A stretch of DNA of 64,000 nt, from positions 1,674,001 through 1,738,000 of the forward strand of contig JANHCV010000008.1 of the NCBI GenBank assembly GCA_025594325.1. Direction: 5' to 3'. Positions within the stretch are counted from its first letter, which is position 1. Each line of letters starts with the position of its first letter. A model generated the notes under the pieces. That model was not told the DNA's origin and ran no database searches. It saw only the letters and a program-made list of their open reading frames with translations. The DNA comes from Blastocladiella emersonii ATCC 22665. Taxonomy: Eukaryota > Fungi > Blastocladiomycota. This document shows positions 13,119-38,592 of this stretch, one piece after another. Made by a program: the position numbers and the translations under genes.

Positions 13119-16100
13119 ATGAAGCAGAAGAAAGGAAAGTCGTCCAAGGCTCACCGCAAGTCCGCCGGCGGCCTTGTTGCTGCCGCCAGCCACGGCGAGG
13201 ACCTGACGTCGGGCCCGCCCGCTGCGTCCTCAGTCCCCCTCGCACCGCCAACGCAGACAAGCGCGACTCTAGCGCTTGACGAGGACACGGACCCGTATCT
13301 TCCCTACGGCAAGTCGTTCCCGCGCGATCTGCTTCTGTACCACAACCCACGCGAGAGCAAGCACCTCGGCGTGCTCGTCTTCCAGTGCGGCGATCTGCGC
13401 GACGTGGCGCACACGGTCGGCGAGGCCGAGCGCAAGTACGGCACCGCGAACCTCGACTTTGTGCTGAGCGACACCCACTTTGAGGTTTTCGCACGCAACC
13501 TGCTCGTCCTGCGTGCCGTGGCGCAGACCAAGATTGCCGACCGCGAAGCTGTCTCGGCGCTCACTCGCCATGTCGGTCAGCTCACCTACTCCAACTACCT
13601 CGACCCGGCGACGCGCGCGTTCTGGGCCGAGCAGATGCGCGGGTGCCTCGCGACTGACTGGACCGCGCCCGACGCCCAGGTCCGCGTTCTCGACGACGCG
13701 ACACGACGCGGGGTGCGTGCCTGCTGGGAGTCGTGGCTCGCCGTCGATTGGTCGCCCGCCAAGTTTGACCAGGCCCGAACTGCTTTCTACGACACGGCGC
13801 GCGCCCGCAAGGGTGCTAGCACCGCGGCACACGCCAACTTTGCCGTGGCCAAAGTACTGCAGCGCTTGCGTAGCTTACATGCATGGAAGTGGGAGTACTG
13901 GTTGAAGCATCACGGCGAGCCTATTAACCTCGAGCTCGAACTGCGCTCAATCGCGACCGAGGGTAACTTCTTCCTCGATCGCAGCGGTGCCAGCAAGCCT
14001 ACGCCGCCCGTTGTGAACCCAACTATGCTTGTCACTGCGTACGCAGACTGCGAGCCTGGCTTGGTCCGCTTCTCTGCCCGCTTCGGCTTGACACCGCTCG
14101 ACGTTTTCCACATCGATCCATTCGAAGCTCTTCACATGTGCATGGAGCGCGAACTTGCCCAGTGGGTCAACACGCTTGTGGACGTGTTCGGGTCGGACGC
14201 CAGAACTGTGCCGCTTTCGGGATCGTATCCGCCCGTTGCGACTTGGTCGGAGCTCCCACACCCGCCTCGCGCGCAGTTCCGCTGCCGTCTCGCCGTGATC
14301 GGCGGGCACCCGACGTCGGTCATGGAGCAGCTTGTGGCGATGCAGACCGAGGGCCAGGACAGCTACACAGCCATCGAAACGGACCGCGTGCTCCCGCTGT
14401 GGTTCAACGCTGTGCAGGCGGGCACGATCATCGACACGTGCGGCATGCTTAACGTTCTCGTGCACGCGTCGCCGCTCTTGACCACAAACTGGGAGAATGA
14501 CCGGTCGCTTATTCTCACAGCAACTGAGCACATGGCGTCGATCGCTGAGACGCGCCGCGTGTTCCTCCGCCGTACCACGGGGCTTCCGTACCAGGTGATG
14601 CCGACGCTTCTGGGCATCAACTTGTATGACCGGCCGCACACCATTTATTGGGTGTCTCACACGACCCCGTTTGCATGGAGCCCCGAACAGGCTGCAATTG
14701 TTTCCAGTGGCGGTGCGGGTGGCCAACAGGAGTTTACTTTCTACAAGCTTGCCGCCCCGACCATCCCGATCGCGCTTCGCGAGTCTCCATTTCTCATTAA
14801 TACGCTCGTCCGGTGCGCCGAGCTGCTTCTCGGCCCCGACTCCGTTGCCATGGCCGGTCATCGCGGTTCGTTTCACTCTCATGGTGCGGCCAAGGTGGAA
14901 CCCAGTCTAACTTAAACGTAAAACGGTTGTGTAGCCGGCTCACACGCGTCGGCGGCGCTGCTCATCAAGCTGATCGGTTTCGCCATCGCCGCAAGCCGGC
15001 TCACGTGGACAGGCAGCGACGCGCTGCCGTTTGCGCCGTGGCCCGCGATGCCCGAGCTGTGGGACGCGCTGCGCGAGAGCAGGTTCCTCGCCCCGCACCT
15101 CGCCGGGCTTCAGGCACAGGCCATGCTGTACGGCTTTCCAATGAATCTCGCCGGCCGCAAGAAGGGCCTTGAGACGGACTTGTTCCGCGTCGAGGGCATC
15201 CTTGATCCTACTGTACTTAATGCTGCCCGCGCTGCCGCGCCGCTGTCGCTCGTAGTGCTCGAGATTGACCAGGGCGGGATTGTGCATCAGTTCCGCAGCC
15301 TCACCACCAAATTGGTTGACGACGGCACGAAGGTGCGCGTCACCACTTACGTTCCACGCTACGTCGTCGACTGCACTGCCGGCGGCGTTGAGCTGCGCGC
15401 GCGCATCCGCTTTTTGTGTGGGCTGCAGCAGTCGCTGCCCGCCGCCACAAAGTCAGCCCCGCTCTCGAATATTGTAACGGAGATGGTTTCCGTCAACTCG
15501 CGCGCGGGCGTTTACGCAGGCATCAGCTACTTCCCCAACGTCACGCGCTACAACCCCCCCTCCGCGTCGCTTTCATCCGTGCTCAGCCCCTGCCGTGACC
15601 TGGCTGTCATGTCCGCGACCGAGCACGAAACCGTTGTCAAACTTATCCTAGCTGTCCCGCGTGCTTACTTCAACCAATCATTCAAGGGTTCCGATTTCGC
15701 CAAGCGAGTGTTGGGCCAGGGTGCCCTCATGATTTCCTACGACCATGGCAGAAAGATACAGGCCATGCAGCTGCCAAGCGGGCCTGCATATCTCGAGGAC
15801 GTGAAGCCGCTTTCTGGTCGCCCGCATAACCGCGCGCTTATTGTAATTCACCGCAACCTCGCGCCTGCCGAGCCCCTTCTTGACTTTTTGCCGCTGACGC
15901 CCAACCTACCCGACTACTCGGACGCTTACTTGCCCGGCAAGCCCAAAACCACTGTCACGTCAGCCGAGATCGCGGCCCACTCCACACTGCAGATGCTGGC
16001 CCTTGTTGCCTACAAGCGCGAGTGCACGGTCAGAACACTCTCTGAACGTTCCTTGCCCATCACTTACTTTGCGCTGAATCTGTCAATCCAGCAGATATCC

Positions 16101-16727
16101 GCGTACATATCCATGTTCAAGGAGTGCTGGGAGGGCAAACGCGTCATCGAGCTGCTGGACGAGAAACCGGGCGCGTACATGGCCGTACTTCTGCTTCACC
16201 GCGTGTCCGTTATCCCACCCGTCGACACTTCACGCGGATACACTCCCGTGCTCGATTGCAGCTACATCGCGCACACAGGCGACCCGGGCATCCGTGTCGA
16301 CCCAGCCCTCGCTTCCCTGATGTCCCAGATTGCGGGCAAGATGTTGCGCGGCAGTAGCGACGACCGTGAGCTCGTGGCCCAGTTCCGCATGGACCTCGTG
16401 TGTCTGCTTGTCCTCATCGAGCATCTCCGGGTGGCCTCCAAGTCGGCACCATCTAAGGAGATACCCGACGACTGCGGCATCGAGTCCGCGTTCTTCGCGC
16501 GCCTTAAGCCCAAGCTTACGCGGTGCTCCATCATCCAGCCGTACCCGACGCAGGATAAGGACCAGAGCATGAACCCGGACAACGACATTCGCGATCACAA
16601 GCACTACAAGGCAGCCATTGCCGCGATGGCGACGATGGCGGGAGTCCGTAACCCACACGCGGCAACAAGTGCGCGCGCCTCGCGCGGCAGCAGTACCACG
16701 GACTCGCGGATCGTGGAGCTTGATTGA
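13119..16727 (+). CDS. DUF4470-family protein copy A, 1179 aa; exons 13119-14865 and 14935-16727; no MYND finger; ends RIVELD
   Basis: YLPYG...LVFQCGDLRDV...FVLSDTHFEVFARNLLVL matches the DUF4470 N-terminal pattern. Phase-1 intron at the same position as in copies D and E. Confidence 0.8.
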
Positions 16728-17044
16728 GTCCGCTCGTGTTTGAAGATCACGTCAATTGACAAACGTAGCATGTTTCATGGATATCACGCCCACGTGCGAA
16801 ACTTGTCGTCAGGCTGCTCAAATTGCGGGGATGAGCGGGATGACGGAATACATGCTGCAGATAGCACGCAGTAATCTGGCCAGAGAGCGGCAAGCTTAGG
16901 GACCGAAGGTTCGCGAGATGCGTCGAGATATCACGTCTGGCTCGCGTGATGACGCGATCGACGTGTTGGTTTCCCACGCGACGCGTCGCGTAAGGTCGCC
17001 CTCCCTCTCCCTCTCTCGAATCCCCGTCAAGTATCTGCACTACC

Positions 17045-18538
17045 ATGAAGCACAATAAAAAGACTAGCCGCAAACGCGTCGCCAAGGCCGAGGCGACCAC
17101 GATTCCCGACTTCAAAGCCACGGGGACCAAGGAAACCGTGACGATGGACAACAGCTACTTTGCTCCCGTCGTCGAGCCGTCGTTGACCTGCACGACGCTC
17201 GCACTCGATGACACGACCGACCCTTACTTTCCCTATGGCGGCTCGCAGACTCGCGATCTCTTTCTCTTCCACAATCCTCGCTCGTTCGATCGACTTGATG
17301 CACTTGTCCTCGAGTGCGGTGACCTGCGCGACATTGCCCGCACGTACGATGCTGCCAAACGCAAGAACGGCCGGGCCGACCTCAACTTCGTGCTCAGCGA
17401 GTCGCACCCCGAGGTCCTCGCCCGGAATCTTCTCGTCCTGCACGCGATCGGCACTCCCACGGATGCCGCCATGCCTGATCTCACGCGGCACATTGACCAG
17501 CTCACGTACTCGCGCCTTCTCGAGCCCGACACTCGCGACTTTTGGCTTGGACAAATGCGCGCATGTCTGGAAGCGATTTGGACTGACGACGACGCTCGGG
17601 TTCGCCTTTTTGACGACAACACGCTGACTGCTATTCGACACTGCTGGACTTCGTGGCTCGCTTGCGATTGGACGCCTCAGCAGCTTGCTGCTGCGCACGG
17701 CGACCCGGCCGAGCTCCAGATGCTTTTGGATCATCTCGACAAGAAAAGACCCAAGCGCTCGTCCAAGAGTATCCGGAAGGTGACGCTTGCTAGCAATCCG
17801 ATCGTCAATTCCATTGTCAACGACGATGAGGCTTGCTTTTTCCTCAGCAACAAGGATTCGCGGATGAAGCTTGCCGTCAATCCTACCGTCCTTCTTGCTG
17901 GCCCGGACGGTACACTCTCATTCTCTGCCCCTGCTGGCCTGTCGCCGCTCAGCGTCATCTGCGTCAACGAAGACGATATCCGTGGGAGCCTGGACCGCAC
18001 CATCCGCGATTACGTCGCGACTCTCACCGAGGCATTCGGGCCTCGTTCCGACGCGATCCAGTCGCCCTTTTCATCCCGCATCGAGTTCATGGCCGGTCAC
18101 CCGCTCGCTGTCATGGAGAAGCTCGTCTCGTACAAGTTTCCCAGCGACCAGGTTCAGCCAGATCCAGAAGTACACCACCACCTGCTGCGCTTCAACGTGA
18201 TCGAGGCAGGCAACTTGATGGAGACGTGTGGACTTCTGAACCTGCTTACCCACGCGTCGCCGTTGCTTGCAGCCCATCAGGGTCACTGCCACTCGCTTGT
18301 CCGTTCGTGGACAGGCTACGTCAAGTCCGGTCCGAGGTCGCGGCTTGACCTTATTCGCCAGGCTACTGGGCTTCAGCTCGAGGCTTTCCCGACCCTGCTT
18401 GGTCTTGAGCAACAAACGGCGATGCCTGCGAGAACGTCGAGAAGCGTTGGCGAGACTGGTCGGAGCTCGTACGCCTCGGGATTCCGCCAATTGAGGCGCT
18501 TAGGGCGGCCGGGCAGGAGCGGGTCATGTAGCGATTAA
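17045..18538 (+). pseudogene. DUF4470 copy B, 3'-truncated (homology ends near 18410)
   Basis: LVLECGDLRDI...PTLLGL, then unrelated sequence. The whole second exon is missing. Confidence 0.75.
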
Positions 18539-19952: not shown

Positions 19953-20310
19953 ATGAAGCGAATGAAAAGGAACTCCCCGCAAACGTATCGCAACCAGCCA
20001 GGCATCCGAACCGTTCGAGCCGGTTCACGGCATCTATGCACCCACGCCGGCAGCTGACCCGGTCTCTGAGCCGTCGCTGACGTGTGCGATGCTTGATTCA
20101 AACGACATGGCCGACCTTTGACCTTTGTACCCTTATTGTCGGTCTTACGCGCGCAATCTCGTCTTTCACCACGATCTGACCTCGCCCGACCGATTTGACG
20201 CGCCTCTCTTCCAATGTGCCGACTTGAGCGACGTCACGCGCACCTTGGACGACGCTAAGCTTAAGGATCGCGCAAAGGAGACATGCGATCTCGCGCGCCA
20301 CTTTGGTTAG
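19953..20310 (+). pseudogene. DUF4470 copy C, short degenerate 5' remnant
   Basis: MKRMKR start; EPSLTCAML...*PLYPYCRSYARNLVFHH...LFQCADLSDVTRTLDDAK with a stop and a frameshift. Confidence 0.75.
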
Positions 20311-20772
20311 CTTACGTTCCCGTTCCTTGTCGGGCCCGCCATCCGCGCAACCTTTGGACTGCTCGAGCGTGAATTGGACCAGCGAGGAAGCCCATACCGC
20401 GCGCTTGCTCAAGATGAACTGCGTGTCGTCCGTCGCTGCTGTTGTTCGCGTCGTTGATGATCCTGTAAAAAAATGCCGATTTCTGTCGTTTTTCTATTGT
20501 CGGAAATCCCTTCAAAGGCCCGTTAGCGCGATAGTTGCTGTTGCTCACAGCAAGACCTTCAATCGAAGCACTTGTGCGCGGAGCTCCGTCGCGTGTGGTT
20601 GGCTTGGCGGGATGCAGCGACGTCCGTCGGCAAGGGATGTCTGTCATCGACTGCTTCCGCCTGTCAGAGAATATCATAACGGGAGGGCGTGAAACTTGCA
20701 CTCGATAGGAAGTATCGGTTATATGTCTCGCAGCCGCCTCTTTGAACTGCCCTGCGAGACGCGTCGGGATAT

Positions 20773-20778
20773 CACGTG
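20773..20778. promoter_or_regulatory. CACGTG box upstream of DUF4470 copy D
   Basis: GATATCACGTGA, 103 bp before ATG 20881; GACGCGTC just upstream. Confidence 0.4.
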
Positions 20779-20880
20779 AGGCCCATGTGACGGGTGGCGG
20801 CGATCGGCTCGAGTCCAAACACGGGTCCAAGGGCTCCGCTCGCTGCCTCTCTACGCCACGCCGTCGATGAACCCGCTGCC

Positions 20881-23800
20881 ATGAAGCGAAAGAAAGCTAC
20901 TACTGCCCGCAAACGCACTGCCAAGGGCCAGGTCGCAACTGATGCCAACGATGTCGCCTCCTCCGCCGACCCGTCGTTACTGTGCGCAACGCTCGCTCTC
21001 AATGAAAAGTCGGATCTGTACCACCCCTTTGGCCAGAACCTCTCTCGCGACCTCTTCCTCTACCACAACCCGCGCGTGCTCAAGCGACTCAACGCGCTGG
21101 TCCTCCAGTGTGGCGACTTGCGCGACGTCGCGCGCACCTTTGATGATGCCAAGCGCAAGTACGGCACCGCCGACCTCAGCTTTGTTCTCAGCGACACGCA
21201 CCCCGAAGTACTTGCCCGCAACCTCCTCATCCTCCACGCTCTGGCTCACTGCGACGAGTCGACCAAGCCTGCTCTCACTCGTTACATTGGCCAGCTCACG
21301 TACTCGGTCATGCTTGATCCCGACTCCCCGAATTTTGGCTCGGACACATGCGCGCTTGCCTGGACACGACTTGGACCGCTGACGACGCTCCGGTCCGTGT
21401 GCTCGATGAGGACACGCTGCGCGCCGTCCGCCATTGCTGGACCTCATGGCTTGCATGCGACTGGACGCCGGAACGGCTTACAGCTGAGCGCGCCGATTCC
21501 TCTGCCTTAGACAAGATCATTAACCAGCTACCCAGCAAGCGCGCTGAGAATGACTCGGAAGCGCCTCAATTTAGCAGCGAACTCAAGTCGATGATCGCTG
21601 ATGGAGTCTACATGTTCGACAGCGAGGTTCCTTCAATTGCTTGCCCCATCGATGCACGGTCCGAGTTTACTGTCAATCCAACAGTTTTTCTCGTGGCCGT
21701 GGACGGCCATCTCACGTACTATGCGCCGGTTGCATCTTCCCCGCTCAACGTCTTGGATGTTGACATGGATGACATGCGCGGCAGTCTGTTCCGCGCCGTG
21801 GGCGAGTACGTTGCAGCCCTACTCGCAGCGTTTGGACCTGGCGACGACGACCATCGACGCGAGCCATTTGCTTGCCGTGTCGCTTTCATTTCCGGGCATC
21901 CTATCAAGGTTATGGAGAAGCTCTTACCGCACAAAGAATCTTTCCTGCTCCCTCAGGCGATTTCCCAGGCACAGCACCACCAGGACCTGCTTCGTTTCCA
22001 CGTCATCGAGACAGGCGACTGCATGGACACGTGCGGACTACTGAATCTGATGGTGTATGCTTCACCGCTGCTCGCTCCGCGTTGGGAACACGGGCACTCG
22101 TACTTTCGCACTTGTACTGATCACGCCCATTCGATCTCAGCGTCGCGCCGCGACTTTTTGCGCCGTGTGACTGGGCTACCGCTCGAGGCGCTACCGACGC
22201 TTCTGGGCGTGAACCTGGTCGAGCGCACGTCCCCCGACCACTGGTCAACCTACGTGACAAACATTGCGTGGAGCGACGTCCAAATGCCGCGCCGCTTCGG
22301 ACTCGTCCGCGAAGAGTTCACTTTCTACGGGCTTCCCGCGCCAACGGTCCCGATCGCGCTTCGCGACTCCACCTTTTTGCTTAATGCGCTGGTCCAGTGT
22401 GCCGAGGAACTTTGCGGCCCTGACGCCGCTGATCTCGTTCAAAAGCCCGGTACGAAACACTCGTACGTCACATTCTAGCAATATCAACTGACTAAACAAG
22501 CGCCTGTATAGCTGGACCACACGCAACGGGCGCCTTGTTGCCCACCCTTCTTGCTTTCGCATTCGCGTCGGGTCGCCTGACGTGGACGGGCAGTACGCAG
22601 CTCACCTCCCCGCCGTGGCCAGACATGCGCGAGCTTTGGTCCGCTGTCAGTACCAGCTCGTGGCTTGCAACGGCTGCGGCAGAGATTTTTGCCCAGGCTC
22701 TTTTGTTCGGCTTCCCGATAAGCGCTGGCAGTGGCGAGATTAGCGGAGATACGTACGTCTACCGTTTCGAGGTCAACCTGATGGATTCGGCCATGGCGAC
22801 GGCAAGTTCTGCGCGCCCGCTGTCGACCCTGCTTGTCGAGGTTACAATTGGATCCGCTGTGCATCAGTTCCGGAGCCTTGTTGTGAAATCGTGTGGTAGC
22901 GGCGACAAAAGGTGGTTCCAAGTCACCACATACGTGCCGCGGTACATTTTTGAGCGTTCGCCAGATCACTTCACTTTTCGCTTCCGCTTTGACTCCGGTA
23001 CCGCTCAAAATTCGGAGTTAGTTACCGCGAATTGGTCGATGGCATCGGGGTCCAAGACCAAGATCGCCGTCGGTTCGCTGGCCAACTCCATCCCAGCTCT
23101 TGTCTCCCTTGCGACAGCGACCCGGATTCTCACTCCGGCGGCTCGTGCGGTGCCTCCTACTTCCGGACCGCTTCTTCCCGTCATCAACGCTATCGAGACT
23201 GCCAACACAATCGAGCTCTCGCTTTCTCGTTCGCGTCCGCACCAATACGCCCGTGTTGATCAAGTCAAGCCCGAGTTGGAGATGCAGCGCTTTGGGGCTG
23301 CTGCTTTCAAGGTAAACGGTAAGTTGCAGGTTCTTCAGCTTCCCTGCAGCGTTAAGGTAGACTCGATTTCGAATGACACACAGCGACGCGTGGTGAAATT
23401 GTCGCTCTTGCGCGCACTTGCTCCCATCTCGCCACGCTCAAATGCTCTCACAATGCTACGTATCGAGACGCCGCGCAAGGATTCGTCCTCGCTGCCCGTG
23501 GCCCTTCCGCCACTTATCCCACATCTCCCCAATCGCTCGGACCTGTACGCGGTGGGAACCTTTGACCAAGGCAAGCAGCTGGAGGCCATATTTTCAGTGC
23601 TCCAATCCATGCCCACCTCGGAGATGAAGCCTATCCCAGATGGGCTGCGCACTCCGCTTCTCGCTCCGTCGGCCAAAGACCAGGCGTGGTACAACCGCAA
23701 CATGTTTATGTACCTTCTCAAGAAGTACCTGCGCGGCGTACGAGTCGCTGAGCTGCACATGACAACCAGCGTCCCACAGCTTGGCCCCCGCTCTGAACTT

Positions 23801-24352
23801 GTTGCAGTGCTTGTTATGCACCGTATCTCGGTGATCCCGCGGACAGACATGTTGCGTTCACACACGCCCGTGCTCGAACTCAGCTACCTCCCAAACCCGC
23901 GGCTTTCCCATCCCAGCTTTGTAACGCCGCGGCCGCAGCTTGCGAGCGACCGGCTTCTTGCGCAGGTCGCCGACGCCTACCGCCACTCAGGCGAGCCCGG
24001 AAAGCATTTATCGCGCATGGATATTCCGTTCAACTTCGTCAACGGCATCTTTAACTGCCTTGAGTATGGGATACTCTCCGCTCCGACCACTGATGTCAGT
24101 GACGAAGCTGGCGCGTTTGACCCAGTCTTCTTTGCTCGACTGAAGCCCCACCTTCGCAACTGCTTCCTCGTTGCTATGTACCCGGTTCACGGAACGCAGT
24201 ACCAGCCCGCTGTCCCTGTGCCCAAACCATCCAATAGTGCTGGCCCTGAGGCAAAGGAGGCCGAGGAGGCGAACATGTCGGACAAGGGCGAACTGGGGCT
24301 GGCCTTGACCGTGGAAGAGAGCGATGATGACCGGATTGTGGAGCTTGACTAG
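20881..24352 (+). CDS. DUF4470 copy D, full length but with a 1-nt frameshift near 21326-21329; intron 22450-22511; ends RIVELD
   Basis: Colinear with copies A and E. Adding one base in the CCCC run restores the conserved EFWLGHMRAC. Confidence 0.75.
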
Positions 24353-24627
24353 GAACTTGGATGTGATTATTTTTCGTCGATGTGCGCAAATTTGTCTGTA
24401 CCTTTGTTTTGTACCATGTGCATCCACCTCAACGAGTGCGCTGGGACCGTCGTCTTGCACGCCGCGAACTGTCAACCTATCCAGACGGTGCCCGCAAGGT
24501 ACGCAGGTACATTCGGCTTATTTGGCCAACGAGTACGAGAGTGAGATATGAGCAGAGTCTTATGCTGACACGCTGCTCGGATGTCTCCCGCGGGCGAGCG
24601 CGACGCGACGCGACGCGTTGCGCCACT

Positions 24628-24633
24628 CACGTG
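24628..24633. promoter_or_regulatory. CACGTG box upstream of SNF2-RING copy 1
   Basis: 143 bp before ATG 24776; preceded by a (CGCGA)n run. Confidence 0.4.
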
Positions 24634-24775: not shown

Positions 24776-27700
24776 ATGCCAGGCGCGTCAGCCAACGTGG
24801 CGGCGGCGGACGGCGCCGCCGCGCCTACAAAACGCGCACGTGGCGCGACGAACTCGACGAATCGGTGCAAGCCTGATGCTCTCGTCACCGATCCCCATGT
24901 GCCCCTGCCCGTCGACCAACCCGGACCTGCTCCAGAATTCAAAGTGCCTCAAACGGCCGAGGAGCGAGAACGCTGCGTGCTTGCTGACCGGGCTGCTTCT
25001 GGATGGTGGATTCCATTCCCAGGGACTATCGAGACTCTCAAGTGCGGACACGCTTTGGAGTCGTTGGATCTCAACAGGCTTCCTGGCACGCTGAGTCTCG
25101 CCGACGAAGACGCGCTCCTCGCGACGCCACAGGTCGTTGGTGAGCAGCCAGGTACGTCAGCGCCGTCTTACACACACCGTACATTGTGACTGATGGATTT
25201 CTTTCACACGTCACAATTTTTAGATCTCTTTCTTCTCTCTACCATTACCAACCAAATGATGCGCTCGACGCGGAACATCGCTGGCAGCATCCCAATCGAC
25301 CCATACTGGCCGAGATCGGCTTCCGGCTTGAGCCCGTGCTTATCTTCGATCGCTCAATGGATCACCGCCGACCTGCTGGGAACCCTTGGGATTATCAGAC
25401 AGTCTACTATCGGCTGCCCCCATGTACCAAGCCTTGGACGCTAGCTGACTTCCGCTCCGTCAAGGTCACCGACTTTTCGGCGGCATATTCCTCGGACGCT
25501 TACTTTGACGACGCGCACCGCCGCGACGGGATCCACAAGCTGTTCAAACCGTCCAACATTCAGCTCCGACTGCTTCCCGTCCTCGACGCAGACGCATTTT
25601 TCGCTGGCGAGGACCCTGAGCCCGCCCACATTGTTGGCAGTGTTGACCGCGAGAACCGAGTACTTTTCCCGACGAGGGACTCGCCGCCGCGCTGGGCTGT
25701 GCGTTCGGGTGACTTGGTCTTGCCACGTCTTGGGTCCTACGGTCCTCTGTTCGAAGAAGTCGATGCCACTGTTGCACGCTACATTCGTGTTGCTGTACGC
25801 CCCGTACTTGTGAATGCTTACTCTTCTGATCCGAGTATGGCTGCGGGCTTTACGTACGAGTGGCAGTACTACCTTTGGACCGCTGGGTTGAACCGCGCTC
25901 TCCGCTCGAATGTTCCAGGCGCGTTGCGTGGGCTTCAGCAGCTTGTCAGATGCTTTTCCATCCTCAAACAACCTGCTCCAAACCTTAACGCAGCCAAGTG
26001 GAAGGCGAGCGATCATGCGCCGACCTGGATCGCTTCTGCTGCGGCCATGGCAGGCGGCGAACTTGGACCAGGTTTCGGTACCAACTCGGGCGCGCTCAAC
26101 GGATTTTTGGCTCCATCTCACGAACATGACGTGCGAGCCTTGGCGTGGATGATCCGGTACGAGTCGGAGCCTGCCTTCCGTGCTTTCGGTGCTCCTGACA
26201 AGTTTACGAAACAGCAGTTCATTCGACTGGGCCCTGGTGGCGTCCTCTTCAATCCGCACCTTAATGAATGGGCCGAGCGCGACATTTGGACCTTGAGTCG
26301 CGAAGCTCAGCCTCCAGCTTTGTACGATTCTAGGCACATTCAGCTTGACCTCTCATCTGTGACCCCGAAGGCGGATGTCCTGTGGCCTCTCCTTGCTTTC
26401 GTACACGCCCGGCGTTGCCAAACGATTGACTCTGTTGACATCCACGACGACGCTTCCCGCGGCCGCTACTTTGCTTCGCGTGCGACGCTTTTCTTGTGCC
26501 ACGAATCGCACCTTGATGGCCTTGCTGCTGCTCTCACCACAGCCCTTGGTACTACGGCACGTATTTTTGTCGTGAAAACAGCCGACGATCATGCGCAGCT
26601 CGCGTGGGATGACGTTCGATTTGCCGACGTTGTGATTGTCGACTCCAAGGTGGTTTCATCCGACGAGTACCGCGCCCGCGTCGCAACGCTCGTCGATGTA
26701 GCTGAGTACCAGCGCCCGCCTGCGCGCGCCGAGGCCGCGTCCGCCGATTACTGCGCCCGAATGGCTCAGGCGCACGTCTACTCGTTTGCCGCGGAGCTCG
26801 GCGACCTTGTCTTCAAATCTCTCAAAGCGGGTCGCGCAAAATTTGGCGAACGTCGCGGCGAAGTTGTCTTTGAGCGGATCTGGTTTCATCGCGTCGTTGT
26901 CTACGCGCTTGAAACGTTGACCGAGGAACCAAAGCCGCCCGCCGAACTGCAGCGGGACTGCTTCCTCAGGCTACCACCGGGATTTTATAGCCAGGAGGAG
27001 ATCGATCGCAGAAACGCCAGCGAGCTTGAAGCGCGTGAGACCGAACTGCGATACGAAACCAACAAGCGCGCCGTGCGCCGTGTCGCTGAATTTATTCCTG
27101 GCCTCCGCGCTACGACGACGGTTTTCGTCCGCGCAAACGTCCACTTGTACGATCGAAACCCGGTGTTTGCTGCCAGTCTACCTCCTGGTGCTCCAGGAAC
27201 TGACGCACTTGGGTGGAGCCACTTGGTTGCCAAGCTTACTTGCACCCGTTCACGTCCCGCAGCCCCTTATTGCCCCGTTGTGCACAACGTTTATACGGTT
27301 CAGCTGAGTACTGCCGAAATTCTACTTGCCCACAGGACGCTTATCAATGCGGTGCCGCGGACAACGCGCATGTATCTCCGAGACTTCCAGAACCATCAAC
27401 TCGGGCTGCTGGCCGCAGCGTGTTTAAAAGGCGTTCCGTACCAGCTCAAGTCCGTGAGCGCTTTGACTCACGAGCTTCGCCATAAGGCCCTTGTCTGTCT
27501 TGAAGGTTTCTCTCGCGTGATCGCGGTGTGTGAAGCGGCACTTGTTACAGCTCAAACCGCCGCACGACACGCAGTTCAAGATTGGCCTGCTGGCCGCCGC
27601 TGGCTCCTTTGCAATGGGCTCACTGCATCTGACCTCGCTTTTCCTTACGCCAGTTCTGTGTCGCTGCAGCCTTTGACGCAAGGGTTTGAGGAGATTGCAC

Positions 27701-28503
27701 CTGACGACCAAGCTCGCCTTCGATTGCTTATTTCACCTGTCAAGGAATCCCACGAGCGTCTCATGAACGCCCTCCATTTGCGAGATGTATTTAATGCCCC
27801 AGCGCCACTGCTCCAGGTCGCAGGAGCCATGTTTGATCCAAACGTTGCTGCGAGTGCAACCTGCTCGTGCTGTTCGACTGTCTTCGATGCCAAGTGGACG
27901 GGCTTTGCCATCACGCCGTGCGCTCATTTCGTTTGCAGCAACTGTGCCGTTCCTGAGACGTGCGCAACTTGCCAAAAACCCATTGAACCTCGCTTTGTGT
28001 CGCGCGCTCCGAGCGGCCCTGTTGCGTACATGGAGTACGGATCGAAGGTGCACAGCATTGCGGCTTACGTGCAGTTTGCGCTTGCAAACACAGCTCAACC
28101 CAAGATTGTTGTCTGGACGCAGTACTCGGGGATCGCACCTTTGCTTTTGGCGCTTCTCAATCGCGACGTTGGCATCATCAAGTTCATCGATGGCGCCTGG
28201 GCCAATATTGTCACCATCACGGCCGCGACACACGAGTTTGACAGCCATACGGGCCCCGTGGTCGCTGTTCTGCACGCCGATGGTCCCCTTGACCACACCA
28301 AGCTCGAGTCCGCAACGCACGTTGTATTAGCGCACCCGCTGCTTGCGCCGACACTGCAGGCCGCTCGAGATCTCGAGATGCGCGTCCTCGCGCGGACCGT
28401 GGTCCCGGGGAAAACGGAGACGGTCCAAGTTGCGCGGTTCGTCGCCGCGGGAACGGCCGAGATCCAGCTTACAGAGGAGCGGACGCGGCTCCCGTGGACT
28501 TGA
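24776..28503 (+). CDS. Degenerate SNF2 (Rad5/16-like) helicase with C3HC4 RING, copy 1; intron from 25152 or 25156 to 25223
   Basis: RALAWMIRYE, SRATLFLC, IWFHRVVV, CSCC...PCAHFVCSNC...CATC, YGSKV...KIVVWTQY, THVVLAHPLL...VQVARFVAAGTAE. The reading frame across the intron is ambiguous. Confidence 0.75.
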
Positions 28504-28650
28504 AGCAGTTTGAGTTTGTTAGTTATGCCTGTCGAGACAAATGAGTAACACGTTTGCGTATACTTGAATAAGGCTTTCCGTAGGAGAAACTAAGGATAGG
28601 CTTTGACCCGAGCTTGACCCGACCGCGAGGCGCGAGACGCGCCGAACAAA

Positions 28651-28656
28651 CACGTG
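28651..28656. promoter_or_regulatory. CACGTG box upstream of SNF2-RING copy 2
   Basis: 126 bp before ATG 28782; CGCGAGACGCG upstream. Confidence 0.4.
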
Positions 28657-28781
28657 ATCAACCGGGAGGCCGCTCGCGGCCGACTTCGGCGCCGCTCTCG
28701 CGCAGGTCTCCGCGCTCCTCCGTCTCGCCTCCAGACCATGTATTGTTGTATCTAACTTGCTGCATTGTTGTTTGCTTGAAC

Positions 28782-31700
28782 ATGCCGAGGGCTCCCGCCA
28801 AAAACCCGGCTGACGGAGCTGCGGCGCCGGCCAAGCGCACTCGGCCCGCTTCGACCCCGGCTGCTACGCCCCCCAAGCGAGCCAAGCTTTCTGCCCCTAC
28901 CGAATCTGCGCAGCTTCCGCTTGCTGTTGGCGACCCAGTCCCGATCGGCGACCTGCCATCTGCTGAGCAGTGCGAGCGCCTTCTCCAAAACGAGCGGGCT
29001 GCGTCTGGCTGGTGGGTGCCGTTCCCCGGCGTGGCCAAATCCGTAGTCGACGAAACCACCGGGCCCGTTCCCACCTACCTCCTCGCCGACGAAGATACGA
29101 CGTTCGCTCGCGATTTCCTCTCGAGTGAGCTGCGGGCCAATTTTGCACCAGCCGACAACTCTCAGCCTGGTACGTGAGCGTTGCGTGTCGTCCTCATACA
29201 GAGCTGGCACTAACGTGGAGAATACCCTAGACCTATACATTGGGTCTGCTACGGCCCACCTCCTCTCGCGGATTCCCATTGATCCCGCGCTTCTTGACGA
29301 GAAACACCGCCTCAAGGGTGATGCAGAGACTCCGATTCTTGGCAAACTCAGGCTTCGCTTTGAGCCCCTCCTCGCGCTTTCTCGCCCAGCGTCTGACCGT
29401 CCGGCCTCCAACCAACCTGCTCAGCGTCACCGAGGTGCTTCCCTTCCTCACAGCGCCGCTCGGTCCGAAACCGTGTACTACCGCCTGTCCCAGGACGAGG
29501 ATTTGTGGGAGTCCGATGCACTCGAATTTCTCGAGGTGACGGAGTTCTCCAAGTCCTACAAGCTCGACCCCTACTTTCAGAAGCGTCGCCGCAACGAGAT
29601 CACGAAACTTCTTGAGCCGGCCAAAACTCGGCTCACTACGTTCGCCGAGCTAGATGGTGACGCTGCTTTCGCCAGTGATAACCCCGAGCCCGTCGAACTG
29701 GCCAACTCGGACCCCGACCCGCTCATCCTTGGCGCTCGCGATTGGTCGCCGCGGTGGGCGATGCGCTCGGGTAATTTGGTCGTCCCTGCGCTGAGCGGCG
29801 CTCATCCGCTGCTACCCCAGGTCGATGCTTACTTCGCGCGTTACTTGTGCGTCGTTGTCCGACCCGTCGCGCGCCAACAGTACCCAGCAACGCGGTCCGA
29901 TGGGAGGCCGTACGTGTACGCGCTTGACGTTTACTTGCGCACGGCGGACCTGAATCGCGACCTTCGCGGCTGCGCTCGCGGCGCTCTGGATGCAGCGGGC
30001 AAAGTCTTCCGCGCGTTTCCACTACCTGGAATGCCCAGCACCGTCACAAAGCGGCCCGTGCTGATGCCCAAGTCGAACAAGGATCTCGCTCCCGCGTGGC
30101 CTACCGAGGCCAACGGTTCCAGTGGCACGCTTGACGGTTTCCGCCTTGCTTTGAGTGAGGAGGAGACCCGTACACTAGCTTGGCTTGTCACGCGCGAAGC
30201 GGATCCGATGTCATATGCTGCTCCTGCTCTCAACCAGCGTATGGATTTGCCTTACATTCGCCTTGGACCAGGCGGTGTCGCCTTCAATCCGCGCCTGGGC
30301 GAATGGGCGGAGCGCGACATCTGGGATTCATCCGAGATCGTGGTCACCCCCACGCGACACTTTTTTGTCGAGATGCGAATGGACGCCAAAAAGCTTGCCC
30401 CATTTCTTGCGCTTGCCCACCTGCGACCATGCGCGTCGCCCAGTGACGTTTTCATTGAACACGAGGCAGATCGCGCCAGCTACGTCCCTTCGCGGGCCAC
30501 CTTGATTTTTTGCCCCTCCAGCCGGATTTCAGATACTCTCGAGTTGATCAAGTCGGCACTTCCCGAGTCCACTCGCGTTGTTGTGGTCCAGGACGCGGGC
30601 TCATACGCGAACTTGACGTGGAGCCAACTGCAGCTGGCCGACTTTGTCGTCCTCTCAGCTAATTTTCTGTGGTCTCTGAAGGACTACCGGACCGCCGTAC
30701 GCAGTATTATCAACCAGTCTGAGTACCACCGCCCACTCTCGCTTGCCGAGTCGGTCGCTGTTGACGATGTTTTGAGTGCCGAGTCCATGACGGCGATTCG
30801 CGCGTTTGCTGCCGCCCTCGCCGGCCACGTTCGGCAGATGCTTTCGGCAGATCCTGTCGAGTACAGCCAGCTTGCCGGCCGGGTTGTCTTCGAGCGAACA
30901 TGGTTCCACCGCGTTGTTGTTGTTGGCTCGGAGGAGCTGCTTGTTGAGCCAAAGGAACCCGTCCAGGAGCGATGCCCTCATTCCGATTTCGATTATGAAG
31001 CCAGCTTTTCTTCGGATTCAGAAGATCAGATGATGAGGTACAACAACTATTTTGGCATGCGGAAGTGGGACTACAAGTCGACGAAGTGGAACCGCAAGAG
31101 CATGGACAAACGTCGCCAGCGCCGCGCGGAGGAGATCGACAAGGATATCACCGCATGGGAAAACCGGCAGAGAGAAGCTCAGCGCAAGCACGACCTTGGC
31201 TTAGCGCGGTCTCAGTTCTTGACTGGCTTCCTCCCCGGGCTCCGTGGGACCACTACGATCCACTTGTCGAGCTGGCGCCAGGCCAGTTCAATCCACCAGT
31301 TGCCCGCCTTTGCTGCCAGCCTCCCACTGCGCAGCGACAAGCTTGAGTGGAACAAGTTTTCGCACACCATCCGCTTCAATCTTGTCGCCGAGCCGGCCTG
31401 GCACACGCGCATCGAGCACGCCGTTCATCACGTCCACCCATCGCCTGCCGAGGTTCTCCTTGCCCACGCGGCCGTGACTTACGCTGCGCCGCTCTCCATG
31501 CACCGTTACCTCAGGGGTTTCCAGCACCACCAGCTCGCGCCTTCCGCCTTGGCCCCGCTCAGTGACGGCCTTGTGGCCGTGTCCACTTTTACCCAGCGGC
31601 TCCACGACGCTACGCAGGCCGAACTTGAAGCGCTCGAGCGCACCGTGACCGCTGCCGCCGCGGGACTTGAGAACGTTCGGTCCTCGATCCGCGACGTCGT

Positions 31701-32715
31701 CCGCAAGTCGCCCACGGCCCGTCGCTGGTTCTTGCAGCACGGGCTCACGCAATCGGACCTCGCTCTTGCCAATACGAAGTCGCTCAGCGCGCCCGCGCGT
31801 GTTCTTAGCCCACGCCTTCAGCAGCTTGGCGACGAGGCCCAGCTCCGCGCGTTGGTCGTGCAGGTCCAAAACTGGCGACTGCGTCTTGAACACGCGGTCC
31901 GCGATCGTGACGCTCACGTTGCTGCTGCTCGACTTGTCTCCGCCGCTGCTTCGCTTTCAGATCAGTCCGCTACGACCGTTGCGCTGGCTTGCGGGCGCTG
32001 CCAGGCTGAAATCAACGTGCAGAACGACTCCTTCGCGGTCACGCCATGCAACCACGCCTTTTGCACCAATTGCCACAGCACTGCAGCCGCTCAGTGCGCA
32101 GCGTGCGGCAAGGCAATTGATCCCCGCTTCGTGACAACGCATTCCGCCGGCGAAGACGCTAATAATGCTTTGGAGCACGGCTCCAAGCTTTCAGCAATCG
32201 CGTCGTACATCCGTTCAGCGGTCCAAGGATCCACCCACGAGCCGTCACGCACCAAGATTATCGTGTGGACGCAGTACGCGGGCTTCGCAGCCGCTCTCAC
32301 CTGCGAGCTCGAGGGACCCGGCGGGATCAAGCTGGTTGACGGCACACAAGGCTTTGTGGCGGCAGCGCGGAACTTCAACGACCACGCGGGACCGTCGGTC
32401 CTGGTCCTTCTCCCTGAAAATGGCGTCCACCTTGGCCGATCCGCGCTCTGCACCGCGAGCCACGTCGTGTTCGCGCACCCGCTGATTGCCCTAACCGAGC
32501 ACGCAGCACGCGAGCTCGAGATGAGCGTTTTCGCCCTCACAATCGCTCCCGGCGTACTGCCGCGCGCTTCCGCGGGAGGTAGCAGTAGCTCTGCGGCTGT
32601 GTACATGTCTCGCGAACACCTGCCTGATCGCGTTCGAGTCGCCCGGTTCGTGGCCGCGGGAACGGCCGAGGTCGAGATGACCAGGGCGCAGGCTCAGGCA
32701 CCATGGGCGGCGTGA
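28782..32715 (+). CDS. Degenerate SNF2 helicase with C3HC4 RING, copy 2, 1290 aa; exons 28782-29169 and 29231-32715
   Basis: RTLAWLVTRE, SRATLIFCP, TWFHRVVVVG, CGRC...PCNHAFCTNC...CAAC, HGSKL...KIIVWTQY, SHVVFAHPLI. The GTACGT...TAG intron restores the frame. Confidence 0.85.
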
Positions 32716-33231
32716 CGATCTTGCGTGCGCGCAGTTGATGGCGGAAGGGTGGTTTTGAGGGATTTGTATCGTTATTTACGATTTCTTGTTTAACCGTGGA
32801 ATGTGAGGCTTGTGATTCGTACATACGCAAGCACCAACTTCAGTCTCACAATCAGGAACGAGGGTCCTGTCCACCGCATGAGACTGTCATCATTCACCGG
32901 TGAAAAACATCGAACATTTCGCAGTTTCTGGTTAGCCAACAATTATTGCTCCTTCGATTACTCGTTTCACCACTGAACTTCATGCACTGACGCAACGCTG
33001 CTGACCACCTTGGCGCCGCTGCTTCTGGAATATGCTGAAATTACTTGATCCGACCGTTGCTCCGTTGCTGACGTGCTCCCATGCTGTTTGGCTCTCATTG
33101 ACGCGACGAGTTTCAGGCAATAGCGAGGGCCGCGTTTACGGCACTCAGGACCTGAAATTGGACATTCCCGCTCATCATGTTCTAGATCAGACGAACCGTG
33201 GTAGGGTCAGAAAACTCCAATTGGACGCAAG

Positions 33232-33935
33232 TTAAGTGAAGCGTACAACTGGTGGAAGTGCAGTCGGAATCACGGCAGCCGCTGTGACCACGAGTTCCGC
33301 GACGCTGGCAGGCATGCGAAGTGAGACCGCGGGTTCCGTTGGAGCGGCGGGGAGAGGCTGTCCAACGGCCTCGAGCAGTTCCACGATTTCGTCAAAGCTT
33401 GGTCGCTTTGAATGATCGCCGTTCCAGCAGGCTTCAATGAGCGGCCTCATGCCCGCTCCGTAATCGGTGGCCATGTCCTTGGGCATTGTTGGGCGAATAC
33501 CCGCCTGGCAGACGGCCTCGGCGGCCTCGGTTTGGGATAAGAGCTCACTCAGCTCCTTTTTGGCAACGCAGATGCCGCGCGGAAGATAGATACACTTGGT
33601 AACGCGACCGTAACCGCCGGAACCCAGTTTCTCTTGCCGTAGTGGTGTGACGACGTCGTAGTCGGTCAACGCCAAGTTAGAAGCCGCGTTGATCCGTTCC
33701 ATAGCATGTTTTTCGAGTCCCGGGACGCGTGAAAGTAGAATGGAGCGAATTTGAGCGAGGATCGAGTCTGTGCCTGCAGAGAGGGTAGCGTGTGGGCGCT
33801 GGAAAGCGAGTTCGATGGCTGCAAAGGCATCGACCGCGGTCTCGATCGTCAAACCATAGTTGATCTCGAACAGCTTCTCGGGGGATAGCGAACCGAGGAA
33901 GTCAGAATGCTCGCATAATCGCTTCTCTTTTGGTT
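33232..33935 (-). pseudogene. Protein kinase (TKL-like) remnant lacking subdomains III-IX
   Basis: LGSGGYGRV...VAKKEL is followed directly by VCQAGIRP...LIEACWNGDHSKRPSFDEIVELLE. No HRD, DFG or APE motif. Confidence 0.75.
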
Positions 33936-34942
33936 TTCTATCGAGGTGCGTTGCTTACTTGACATTATGCAGCACGACTTGTTGCTCGCTCTGACCGCGG
34001 CCACTGAGATCATCCCACCGTGTGCTCCGTTCAGAGTTGCCCAACTGCGGCAAGTGTCAAAATGTCGGCATCTAGGTCATATTCACGCTGACACACAAGT
34101 TTGTATGCCCTGTCTCGGCCGCACTTGGCCCCGCGGCGCCCAAGAACTCGACGTCGCGACAGCACGCCTACGTGACGACGCTACGACGCGACGAGGCACA
34201 CCGGTGACGCCCTTGCATCGCCTAAGTTGACGAGATCGGCAGTGGCTTCCGCACCAGTATTGCCGAAGCGCTCGCTGGGCCGATTTTTGACTCGAAACGC
34301 CTCAACCGCACGGCGGCCGCTGGCGTGGATGTGTCGCTCGCCGCGCGATTCAAAGCCACATACGGCTAACTGCACAACCTCATTGACACGCGTCTCGAGC
34401 GCCATTCAAGAAGACGTTGGCAGGTCCCAATTTACCGTTATCGCCGAGGTCGCGCCCACAGTCCAAGGCGCTGCGTCGCTGCCGTCCAGCGCGAACGATC
34501 GGCCGCGCCGTCCCTTGACGCAAGCACACCGCGCAGCATCCCCTCGCTCGATCCAGTAAAAAGGCATGCGTGGCACCATGCGGCTCACTTTTGCTGGCAT
34601 AAGAGTATGCCACGACGTGCTCCTACTCGTGTACGCTAAGCCGAAACCGCCCTTGCGTCGGCCGGACGCGCTGCGCCGCTCACATGACCTGACCAACGCG
34701 TCAAGCGCGAGCATGGGTTAAAGTAGCAAAGTTGATGCCGCTCCGCTGCCCAGCCTGGGGCTCAATTTCTTCGCATCAAGTGCCGCAGATCTTTTGCCGC
34801 CTCTCAATACATGCGGTCATGTTGATCACACATCTTCACCCCTCCCTAACGCGACGCATCATGCGGACATGAGCAGCGCGTCTCGGGCAGCAGTTACTTT
34901 CTCGGCTGACCAGAGGGAAATTGGAGGGAGTAAATATGTTCA

Positions 34943-37900
34943 TTACTCGTCAACTTCCACAATACGACCCTCTTCATCCCCGTCATCGTCCTCGCCATTC
35001 TCTCGCGTGAAGTTGCCGTCAGCGCGAGACTTCGCGCCTGCGCTCGGCGGCGGGATCGTCGGATCAAGCGTCACAACAGCGGGAGGGGTGGCGGGCTGCG
35101 ACTGTGCTTCTGCGTTCAGGTACTGCTTACCTGGACCTTTGAACACGGGCAGGAGGGCGCAACGGTACAAGCATGGCTGAAATTCAGCGAAAAGGTCCGC
35201 GTCAAAATCGCCGTTCGCGTCTGAGACATCTTGATTAGGCGCGGACAGCGCCGAGCCGTCGAGACAAGCGGCAAAGCTGGGCCAGTTCTCGACGGGAACC
35301 CTGAGTTGTTCCGTTTGCCCGAGACCGCGGTAGGCGACAGCGACCTTTGGGATCAAGGGCTTTGTATCAGCCCGCAGTGGCGAGGGCAGGAACTGCGGCA
35401 TGCCGGCCATCACCCGCCTGGGCAAGTACAGCATGTCAAGAACGGGCGTGTGGGCGCGCGACGAGTCTGGCGGTGGCAGGACTGACATGCCGCGGAGGAC
35501 CAAGACGGACAAGTACTCGCCCCGATTCAGGTTGGTGACTTGCCCAAAATTGCCCATCATGATTTCAACGATGCGAACGCCACGGACGTAAGCTTCAAAC
35601 AGGCTGGCCGTAAGCATGCGCAAGTAAGCGACCTGAAGGTCGCAGTCAACGAAGAACTTTTCCGGGGTCAAGGCCGGGCGCACAATCTTGATGGCCAGAG
35701 CCTCGAGCTTGGGAGTAGCAACCCGCAGCGCAGTAAGTGCTGCCAGCTGATCCACCGACCACGGCGCCTCGGTCGGGAACACGTCCGTGTCGTCCGGAAG
35801 GCACGGAACAAGCGGGTGGCAAAGAAGGTAATGAAAAAAGGAAGCGGGTGCAAGCACACGCTTGTAACGGAGCCTAACGCGGCCTTCTCGTGGATCGAGC
35901 GCAATTTCAGTCAAACTGGCGTGGCCTGGCAGCCGGAACATCTGGAGCTTCCCGTTGACTGAGACGAGGGGAGCGCCGTAGGCACGAGCGATTTCGGATT
36001 GGGGAGGCTTTTCAAGCTTGGTGGCTCCGCGCGGAAGCGCAAGAAGAACTTCGTACCCATCCTCAACCTCAATAGCAAGAATGGGACGCAGGATCGGAGG
36101 CGTAGTTGGCCGCAGCATGTTCTCGCCGAATTTCTGAAAGCGCGCAACGGCAGCAAATCTGGCGGTACTTGCCATCGTGTGTGTGAGTGAGCCGACGGGA
36201 ACCTTGACCACCGAGACGGACGCGAGCATAACGCGCTGCGTGCTCAAGGTTGCAGCAGAACCGTGGCCATAATCAAAGCGGACGCGGGGGTTGAGCTGGC
36301 TCGATGATCCCTCAACCATGTACCGTGGGACGTACGCGGCAACCCGAAGCAACTGTCCGCCATCGATTGGCTCAAGGATGAGACTACGGAACTGGTGGGT
36401 AAGCAAGCCGTGCGTGACCTCGAACACCAGAGCCGCAAGAGGGTTCACGTTGGTTGCTGCCGTGGCAAACGCGCGATCAAAGGTACCCTCGACGCGGTAC
36501 AACACTTTGTCGCCAAACATTTCACTGATCGCAATCGGGAAGCCGTAGAGCTGCAACTGTGCGAAGGTCTCGGCTGCGCATTCTGCAAACCATGCGTCAG
36601 CGTGGAGGGTCGTCCACAAGCCACGCGCATCAGGCCACGGCGCATCTCTGTGCTGCACAGTACCAGTCCAAGTTAACCGGCCCGAAGCAAACGCAAAAGC
36701 AAATAGCTTAGCCAGGAGGGCGCCCGTGGCACTGGCTCCCGCTATACGTCGCGACGCGGTGGAAAAAATCGTCAATTAACCGTTCCTCTCCGCAGTTTGA
36801 AGTCCATGAAGTCCATTTAATCGTACCTGGTTTGCCAACGAAGGCGGTTGGAGCGTAAAGCGCAAAGAGCCTCTCGGTAAACTGCCTAGCCACGTGGTGA
36901 AAAAGTCCAGAGTCACGCACCGCGATCGGGACGGTCGGGGCGGGGAAGCTGTAGAAGGTGATGTCTTCCCGGCTCCGACCGCCGCGGCGCAAGAGCTGCG
37001 CTTTGCTCCAAGCGATACGCGTCGCGTGCGTTGACCAGTCATGCTCTCCCGGATCTTCGAGCAAGTTCAGGCCGAGCAGCGTTGGCCAAACTTGGAGAGG
37101 AATGGAAGTGACCTCGCGCAAGAATTCGTAACGGTTGGGCGCAATCGAGTCAAGGTGTTCGGTCCATGTGTGGATGAGCGAGCGCCCATATTCCCACTCG
37201 ATAGCAAGGAGCGGTGATCCGTGCACGAGCAAGTTGAGAAGCCCGCAGCTGTCCATCCAGTCGCCCGTCTCTATGACGTTGAAGCGAAGCAAGTCCTGAA
37301 CGTGCTCGGCGGGCTGCTGTTGCTGACGCTGCTGGTCCGGCCGACGAGGATGGCAGAGCTGGTGTTGCGAAACAAGTTGCTCCATGACCTGGACAGGATG
37401 ACCGGCAACAAAGGCGATACGGCACAAAAAGTCGGCCTGACCCGTTTTGATTTGTTCACTAAGAGCATCCGACGCGATCTTGGAGTCGCGACGGCGGTCG
37501 CTGCCAGGGCCAAACGCTTCAGTGAGAGATGTAACGTACTTTTCCAGCGCAAGTTGGACACTCCCATGCACGTCCTCGTGGTTGACGTGCAGGACGTCGA
37601 ACGGAGACAAGTCAAAGGGGACCGAGATCGAAAGTGCGCCGTCAAGGTCCGTGAGAAGCATGGCGGGGTTAGCGACCAAGTCGGGCGGCGCGTGGACATT
37701 ACCCAAGTCGGGATAGAAGGATTCGAGAAGCAGACGAAGCTCGCGGTCGACCTCCTCTTCAACTTCGCCAGTGGGAAAGTTATCCCCATGTGCGTCTCGC
37801 GCCCAGCCCATGAAACGATTGACAGCAGCTTGCGCATAGTCGCTGCGGTCCTCGTCACTGCCGACTCGCGCAAAGTAGACAGCAAGCGCCTCGACGAGCT

Positions 37901-38492
37901 TTCCGACCGACCAGTTGCAAGCGAGCCATGCCTCCCAGCAGCGTCGGACGGCGCCAAGTGTCTTGTCATCGAGCACGCGAACTTGAGCGTCCTCGCGGGT
38001 CCAATCGGCGGCCAGACAACCGCGCATCTGGGCCATCCAGAACTCGGAGGTCGCGGGCTCAAGCATAAACGAATAAGTGAGCTGACGGACGTGGTGCGTG
38101 AGAGCCGGTTTCGTCTCCTCGTCACATTCGGCAACAGCGTGCAGAACAAGCAAGTTGCGGGCAATCACCTCGGGGTGCGTGTCGCTGAGAACAAAAGCGA
38201 GGTCGGCGGTGCCGCACTTGCGCTTGGCGTCATCGAACGTGCGCACGACGTCGCGCAGGTCGCCGCACTGGAAGACGAGGGCATCGAGCCGGCGGAAGGT
38301 GCGCGGGCTGTGGTGGAAGAAGAGGTCGCGGGCGTAGGACCGGCCGTACGGGTAGTACGGCGTGCTGGCGTCGCCGTCGAGGGCGAGAGTGGCGCAAGTC
38401 CGCGACGGCACGACGACGTCGGGCGGACTGGCCTCGGAGTAAGCCTTGCCCTTGGCGGGTCGTTTGCCATTAGTCTTTTTCTTTTGCTTCAT
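34943..38492 (-). CDS. DUF4470 copy E, 1154 aa; exons 38492-36827 and 36741-34943; ends RIVEVDE
   Basis: LVFQCGDLRDV, SDTHPEVIARNLLVL, FASGRLTW. Phase-1 GTACGA...TAG intron in the conserved position. Confidence 0.85.
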
Positions 38493-38586: not shown

Positions 38587-38592
38587 CACGTG
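38587..38592. promoter_or_regulatory. CACGTG box upstream of DUF4470 copy E
   Basis: 95 bp before ATG 38492; GACGCGTC nearby. Confidence 0.4.

Follow-up and report, generated by a model that had tools for sequence, protein, structure and literature searches.

Do the two gene families intermingled at positions 13119-38492 of a 64,000-nt window of the Blastocladiella emersonii ATCC 22665 genome (C20:1674001-1738000, on a contig of 1.80 Mb; the published assembly comprises 21 contigs, PMC9730499) form a two-part system, or are they only neighbours? Five complete or partial DUF4470 copies (genes A, B, C and D and one fragment) lie here around two tandem genes for SNF2-RING proteins, S1 and S2, and the initial annotation had proposed from this arrangement a dedicated, previously undescribed nuclear module. 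The region is probably a birth-and-death gene-family island, in which two unrelated, lineage-expanded families stand as neighbours, rather than a demonstrated two-part system. The first family would consist of MYND-less DUF4470 proteins of about 1,150-1,200 amino acids (aa), and the second of predicted Rad5/Rad16-type SNF2-RING pseudo-ATPases.

The distribution of both families over the genome carries this reading. DUF4470 is represented by at least 150 matches, and a genome search with S2 yielded about 33 SNF2-RING loci. Five of these 33 loci are situated within 10 kb of DUF4470, against an expectation of 2.2 (binomial p=0.07, with tandem copies treated as independent), and seven among the 150 listed DUF4470 matches are found within the same distance of an SNF2-RING locus; all these counts derive from listed domain matches and not from genes, which makes the statistics approximate and is a first point against the reading proposed here. 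The SNF2-RING clusters on contigs C1, C3, C11, C15, C16 and C17 have no DUF4470 within 100 kb or more. As a control, we used the unrelated expanded family of the gene adjoining the island at 10282-12630, of whose 42 loci 16 come within 10 kb of a DUF4470 match, against an expectation of 2.8 (p=5e-9), with strong co-location with DUF4470 arrays on C4, C5 and C20. Other families share islands with DUF4470 arrays to a greater extent than SNF2-RING genes do. The two families are for the most part unlinked elsewhere, an outcome that the initial annotation had named as refuting its proposal, and the claim of a dedicated module fails at this point, sparing follow-up effort on the pairing. The control gene itself is a 782-aa open reading frame (ORF) without Pfam match, belonging to a very large family with 341 first-look candidates.

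A promoter box shared by most of the genes had been counted among the signs of a common system. The box, composed of GCGAGACGCG, 7-20 nt and CACGTG, is present 120-180 bp 5' of the ATG in six of six genes, in one copy each, and combines a MluI-box-like ACGCG(T) with an E-box. It is nevertheless not specific to these families: because the composite GAGACGCG, 4-30 nt, CACGTG occurs in 826 copies in the 32.7-Mb genome, versus 14 for the reversed control, the box is a generic element, and as a sign of DUF4470/SNF2-RING co-regulation it was rejected. The composite often takes the form of one stereotyped 23-mer and is found also on C1, where DUF4470 is rare; in the window it occupies 20756-20778, 28634-28656 and, on the minus strand, 38587-38620. 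It may rank among the major promoter elements of B. emersonii. Every gene of the island is a separate transcription unit, preceded by a box of its own. For work on B. emersonii as an optogenetic model fungus, the 23-bp box is perhaps more useful than either family.

The alternative that survives best is confined to a single SNF2-RING clade. The SNF2-RING tree places S1 in a clade with C19_239k and C19_319k (plus C19_107k), all from contig C19, which was sampled over 200 kb and on which both families are interleaved between 217 and 370 kb, as in the window. Several observations made here count against a purely neighbourly origin. Firstly, S1, C19_239k and C19_319k are each directly preceded by a same-strand DUF4470 gene, and these three loci, all of the S1 clade, are the ones that show direct DUF4470-then-SNF2-RING adjacency. 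Secondly, the synonymous divergence (dS) between D and C19_317k (1.29) is nearly the same as that between S1 and C19_319k (1.27), which fits a pair copied as a unit. Thirdly, the window and the sampled part of C19 share only these two families, a kinase-like piece aside. A functional link limited to the S1 clade is accordingly possible, at a low probability.

Such a link would be a genuine two-gene module, with the DUF4470 protein as substrate or adaptor of an E3 ligase and its upstream position kept by selection. We consider it unlikely, even though, at three of the four clade genes, DUF4470 is encoded on the same strand 0.2-0.6 kb upstream and the two dS values coincide. The upstream partners belong to three different DUF4470 clades (C with B, C19_245k with A, and C19_317k with D), 28 of the 33 SNF2-RING loci are unlinked to DUF4470, the control family is linked more tightly, and each gene carries a separate copy of the generic box. 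None of the three adjacent pairs has both partners free of breaks or truncation; on C19, the sequence of C19_245k is readable in three frames, C19_239k contains an in-frame stop and C19_317k is truncated. Moreover, an S1-type gene closes a four- to five-gene DUF4470 array in both islands, and at an array end a DUF4470 neighbour is therefore almost inevitable. A more specific proposal, which we rate slightly lower still, is that the S1-clade pseudo-ATPases might be RING E3 ligases acting on, or steered by, the DUF4470 protein encoded upstream, the two constituting a fast-diversifying, Blastocladiella-specific nuclear recognition pair with the dead lobes as binding platform. As to the suggested role in defence, allorecognition or ciliary assembly, none of the observations made here indicates one, although no test was aimed at it.

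Under the birth-and-death reading, the interleaving arose by tandem and segmental duplication, after which the copies diverged under purifying selection that was relaxed but real, and occasionally decayed through frameshifts, truncation and fragmentation. The adjacency most likely goes back to one ancestral juxtaposition, which would have been copied between the C19 and C20 islands, the DUF4470 arrays later growing in place on each. Within the DUF4470 tree, gene B is sister to C, and the closest paralogue of A is located at C19:243.8-247.4 kb (74% identity in the N half). Co-duplication of a unit made of A and S1 with the C19 unit of 245k and 239k was considered and rejected, given the two-fold difference in dS (0.61-0.72 for A versus C19_245k, 1.39 for S1 versus C19_239k). 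Just past S2 there is a kinase remnant, and its intact relative, a 585-aa ORF at C19:105.0-106.8 kb (Pkinase, 2.5e-36), stands directly beside C19_107k; the remnant and this relative are a trace of segmental ancestry common to both islands.

Decay of this extent raises the question of whether the island copies are mostly non-functional relics drifting neutrally, as the broken reading frames of C and of the S1 exon junction, the truncated B, the 0.3-kb fragment, the kinase remnant and the stops in several C19 copies might indicate. This is improbable, to about the same degree as the recognition pair. ORFs of 560-1,196 aa are still open at 35-50% identity, and the RING ligands, the intron position, the basic N-terminal motif and the C-terminal RIVE(L/V)D are all kept. 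The ratios of nonsynonymous to synonymous divergence (dN/dS) estimated by NG86 range between 0.24 and 0.53 for both families, not about 1, with dS partly saturated in the older pairs; the characterization of both families as fast-evolving, under constraint and not neutrally, holds.

Spread of the copies by, or as cargo of, a mobile element, which would explain both copy number and co-occurrence and to which the occurrence of several loci as 100% identical inverted duplicates might point, is very improbable, considering that the copies are 30-75% identical, far from near-identical, that the units have neither terminal repeats nor transposase and conserve a spliceosomal intron, and that their base composition is like that of the surrounding sequence.

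The window itself contains a perfect inverted repeat downstream of the island (Table 1), with 4,378-nt arms that are 100% complementary and separated by 2,276 nt. Identical inverted pairs exist also at several other DUF4470 and SNF2-RING loci, for example C17:1596604/1626741, C19:394521/423008, C20:405657/549867 and C1:293755/396762. Either true palindromic duplication or an artefact of the assembly would account for such pairs.

The individual genes were delimited by self-comparison and tblastn as listed in Table 1, with exons searched one by one. The count of five DUF4470 copies holds for pieces, four of them recognized by Pfam (PF14737, cut-off 25 bits) and the fifth by tblastn, but only A, C and D are full length. 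Each apparent pair of DUF4470 ORFs represents one gene, interrupted in A, C and D by an intron whose position in the protein is the same, and exon 2 opens with AG(S/P/A)... in all three. The C-terminal half of gene B was absent downstream by tblastn. Gene C, termed copy D in the initial annotation, has a 1-bp frameshift near 21331-21345, where there is too little room for an intron. The 424-bp gap reported between a DUF4470 gene and the first SNF2-RING gene was found as described, between the end of C at 24352 and the S1 ATG at 24776. S1 and S2 are indeed tandem paralogues (34% identity across about 1,180 aa), each with a short first exon followed by a large ORF (25186-28503 and 29125-32715, ~1,100-1,200 aa). 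The canonical donor and acceptor of S1 (25152/25223) leave exons 1 and 2 one base out of frame, and in-frame joining is possible only with the weak donors 25156, 25165 or 25186. Thus two neighbours, C and S1, both have a one-base frame problem (21331-21345 and 25150-25225, respectively) in more than 3.4 kb of otherwise open sequence, which may reflect true lesions or errors in the consensus. As for the F-box-like, LRR, ankyrin and kinase remnants that had been reported around the island, no LRR was seen, and the ankyrin and kinase matches are under the Pfam cut-offs. The 71-75% GC stretch adjoining the island harbours an ordinary JmjN-JmjC-PHD histone demethylase gene (JmjC, 1.7e-34).

Table 1. 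Features of the DUF4470/SNF2-RING island and adjoining sequence (window coordinates; Pfam DUF4470 scores in bits).
Feature	Position	Strand	Evidence and remarks
ORF of the control family	10282-12630	-	
Promoter box of A	12979-12995		
DUF4470 gene A, full length, 2 exons	13119..16727	+	Pfam DUF4470 43.6; starts MKQKKGK
Gene A intron	end 14934, donor at 14857-14884	+	
Gene A C-terminus	16707-16727		RIVELD
Promoter box of B	16913-16922		
DUF4470 gene B, truncated to its N-terminal half, 497 aa	17045..18538	+	Pfam DUF4470 39.4
DUF4470 fragment, 0.3 kb	20041..20358	+	tblastn 54% identity, 69 bits, to residues ~31-104 of copy D
Promoter box of C	20754..20778	+	upstream of C
DUF4470 gene C, full length, frame break	20878..24352	+	Pfam DUF4470 43.9, ORF 20794-21510
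Gene C intron	22450-22511	+	
Gene C C-terminus	24332-24352		RIVELD
Promoter box of S1	24598-24607		
S1, predicted SNF2-RING pseudo-ATPase	24776..28503	+	paralogy to S2; motif loss; RING kept
S1 intron, canonical sites	25152-25223		
Promoter box of S2	28632-28656		
S2, predicted SNF2-RING pseudo-ATPase	28782..32715	+	zf-RING_5 22.3 bits (sub-cut-off); motif loss; family profile
S2 intron	29170-29230	+	GTACGT ... ACTAAC ... TAG
Kinase remnant	33232-33954	-	
DUF4470 gene D, full length	34943..38492	-	Pfam DUF4470 41.9; starts MKQKKKT
Gene D C-terminus	34943-34966	-	RIVEVDE
Gene D intron	36742-36826	-	
Promoter box of D	38587-38622	-	
JmjN-JmjC-PHD histone demethylase gene	40283-43042	+	
Perfect inverted repeat, arms	46364-50741 / 53018-57395		

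The description of S1 and S2 as ATPase-dead SNF2-RING proteins was borne out in detail, although Pfam alone shows no more than a sub-threshold RING (22.3 bits, in S2, and 14.6 bits) and no match of either protein to SNF2-rel_dom or Helicase_C even at E<=10; a phmmer comparison of both with the PDB gave nothing useful, and the matches of a word-based protein search with S2 were confined to B. emersonii. Their SNF2 identity comes instead through family profiles and intact paralogues. The profile of the SNF2-RING family matches the PDB entry 7r76 (deposited as Rad8, 2,348 aa; the Cryptococcus DNMT5 structure) at 1.3e-27 and Rad5 (6l8n) at 5e-19, and a profile built from the degenerate copies alone still matches them at 1e-21 and 7e-10, respectively. 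A protein named in UniRef as SNF2 N-terminal domain protein (P0018) aligns with profile positions 291-1122. Two distant paralogues, L001 (C11:901 kb) and L002 (C3:721 kb), passed the RING models and SNF2-rel_dom (30.0 and 28.5 bits, respectively; cut-off 24.9), and L001 passed also Helicase_C, for which L002 is just under the cut-off (22.7 versus 23.5); the N-lobe alignment to L001 reaches 3.5e-24.

Both paralogues possess intact motifs, namely GSGKT/GAGKT, DELH/DEMH, LTGSP and Q..R..RAGQ. In the columns of motifs I and II, where L001 has GSGKT and DELH, S2 has MDAKK and VGSEE, and S1 has SVTPK and YALET; motif III reads LRATT in S1 and LRGTT in S2, and of the motif VI arginines one is left in S1 and none in S2. 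Unrelated residues occupy the same columns in all sampled C19 copies and in the C1 copies. By contrast with these losses, the C3HC4 RING between the lobes keeps eight of eight ligands in both S1 and S2 (C-x2-C ... C-x-H-x2-C-x2-C ... C-x2-C), with C956, C959, C980 and C983 invariant and C975 and H977 nearly invariant in the alignment. On these motif comparisons, the prediction that S1 and S2 are Rad5/Rad16-type SNF2-RING proteins turned pseudo-ATPase is well supported. Copies of this type would have lost ATP hydrolysis and probably work as RING E3 ligases, in which the pair of RecA-like lobes and the N-terminal region peculiar to the family would be left with the sole role of a binding scaffold.

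A whole-library profile search recovered family-specific relatives in Catenaria anguillulae, B. britannica, Allomyces javanicus and A. arbusculus. The motifs are kept in all Catenaria, B. britannica and Allomyces relatives but one A. arbusculus protein, and since the other blastoclad relatives retain them, the dead clade was seen in B. emersonii only. The exceptional A. arbusculus protein (P0027, KAJ3365885.1), a relative of the intact clade, has independently degenerate motifs (NDDPSKT, DGIKD and VSYSP). Loss of the ATPase motifs may thus be recurrent within the SNF2-RING clade.

In an alignment of 38 sequences of the DUF4470 family, 37 matched DUF4470, and neither zf-MYND nor DUF4471 was detected in any of the 38; DUF4471 was also missing from the window ORFs. 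Word searches with DUF4470 exon 1 and with the DUF4470 profile returned relatives in B. emersonii only, the profile search of the 38 sequences against the PDB gave no match at E<=10, Pfam at E<=10 gave none for the C-terminal halves, and the ESM Atlas offered no usable match for the C-terminal half of D. The basic N-termini resembling nuclear localization signals that had been noticed earlier are present, as lysine-rich MK(Q/R/H)KKK starts (e.g. MKQKKK, MKRKK) in the DUF4470 genes and as KRAR and KRTR in S1 and S2, respectively.

The predicted model of D residues 35-400 (N-module) is of good quality (predicted local distance difference test score, pLDDT, 85.5; predicted template modelling score, pTM, 0.87). 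Foldseek found no match to it at E<=0.001, and VIA gave a best Z of 6.0, with PRMT5, MnmC, SAMT, HNMT and GRAS at Z 3.9-5.0, under the background of the tool. A conserved QCGDLRD is located after strand 1 and a conserved D at the end of strand 2, places at which, in our own reading of the model, methyltransferase motifs I and II would be expected. The view that these are methyltransferase-like proteins with altered catalytic motifs is not established by such sub-background fold matches and stays a lead; the corresponding statement on the SNF2 motifs is the part that stood.

The full-length model of a DUF4470 paralogue (P0004) was poor (pLDDT 54.5). Its residues 774-873 were modelled as a CS/HSP20-like beta-sandwich, with VIA Z 7.0, a root-mean-square deviation of 3.2-3.6 over ~80 residues and a Foldseek E of 0.016, values within background. 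The RIVE(L/V)D tails of A, C and D resemble the EEVD tail of Hsp70/Hsp90, and together with the possible sandwich this is a weak hint at a co-chaperone link. The DUF4470 proteins are probably nuclear and of adaptor type, a tentative assignment based on the alpha/beta N-module, the possible CS/HSP20-like sandwich and the acidic tail.

With DNAAF3/PF22 and the fungal MYND-DUF4470 proteins the window family shares the ~95-residue DUF4470 domain (39-44 bits against the cut-off of 25). Among DUF4470 proteins, a role has been described for DNAAF3 alone, in axonemal dynein assembly (PMC8565470). The B. emersonii proteins differ from these groups in having neither DUF4471 nor zf-MYND, in their length of about 1,150-1,200 aa, in their long family-specific C-terminal half and in being present in at least 150 copies rather than one. 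Neither this expansion nor that of the SNF2-RING genes is described in the genome paper (PMC9730499) or was retrieved by full-text searches. As far as found, both are new: a MYND-less DUF4470 family that is among the largest in a genome of about 10,000 genes, and a blastoclad-specific Rad5/16-like SNF2-RING gene at about 30 copies, most of them without any ATPase motif and with the RING kept.

Rad5/Rad16-type SNF2 ATPases, with a RING between the RecA-like lobes, include Rad5, Rad8, HLTF, SHPRH, Ris1/Uls1 and the SNF2-RING part of DNMT5. S1 and S2 have the same order of N-lobe, RING and C-lobe, but differ from these proteins in the loss of Walker A, DExH, motif III and the motif VI arginines (one left in S1), in a blastoclad-specific N-terminal region without Pfam match, and in belonging to an expansion of roughly 30 copies, the dead ones of which were seen in B. 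emersonii only. Lineage-specific birth-and-death E3 families are represented by TRIM in vertebrates and by F-box and BTB-MATH in plants and nematodes. With these the B. emersonii genes have in common tandem arrays, fast divergence at moderate dN/dS, frequent pseudogenes and, beside a variable remainder, a conserved RING; unlike them, the scaffold of the B. emersonii family would be a dead SNF2 motor, which to our knowledge has not been described as an expanded family, and the family is not known to be linked to immunity or to any substrate. The SNF2-RING genes would be a clear case from nature of a motor enzyme that became a pseudoenzyme scaffold, and relatives with intact motifs are on hand for comparison.

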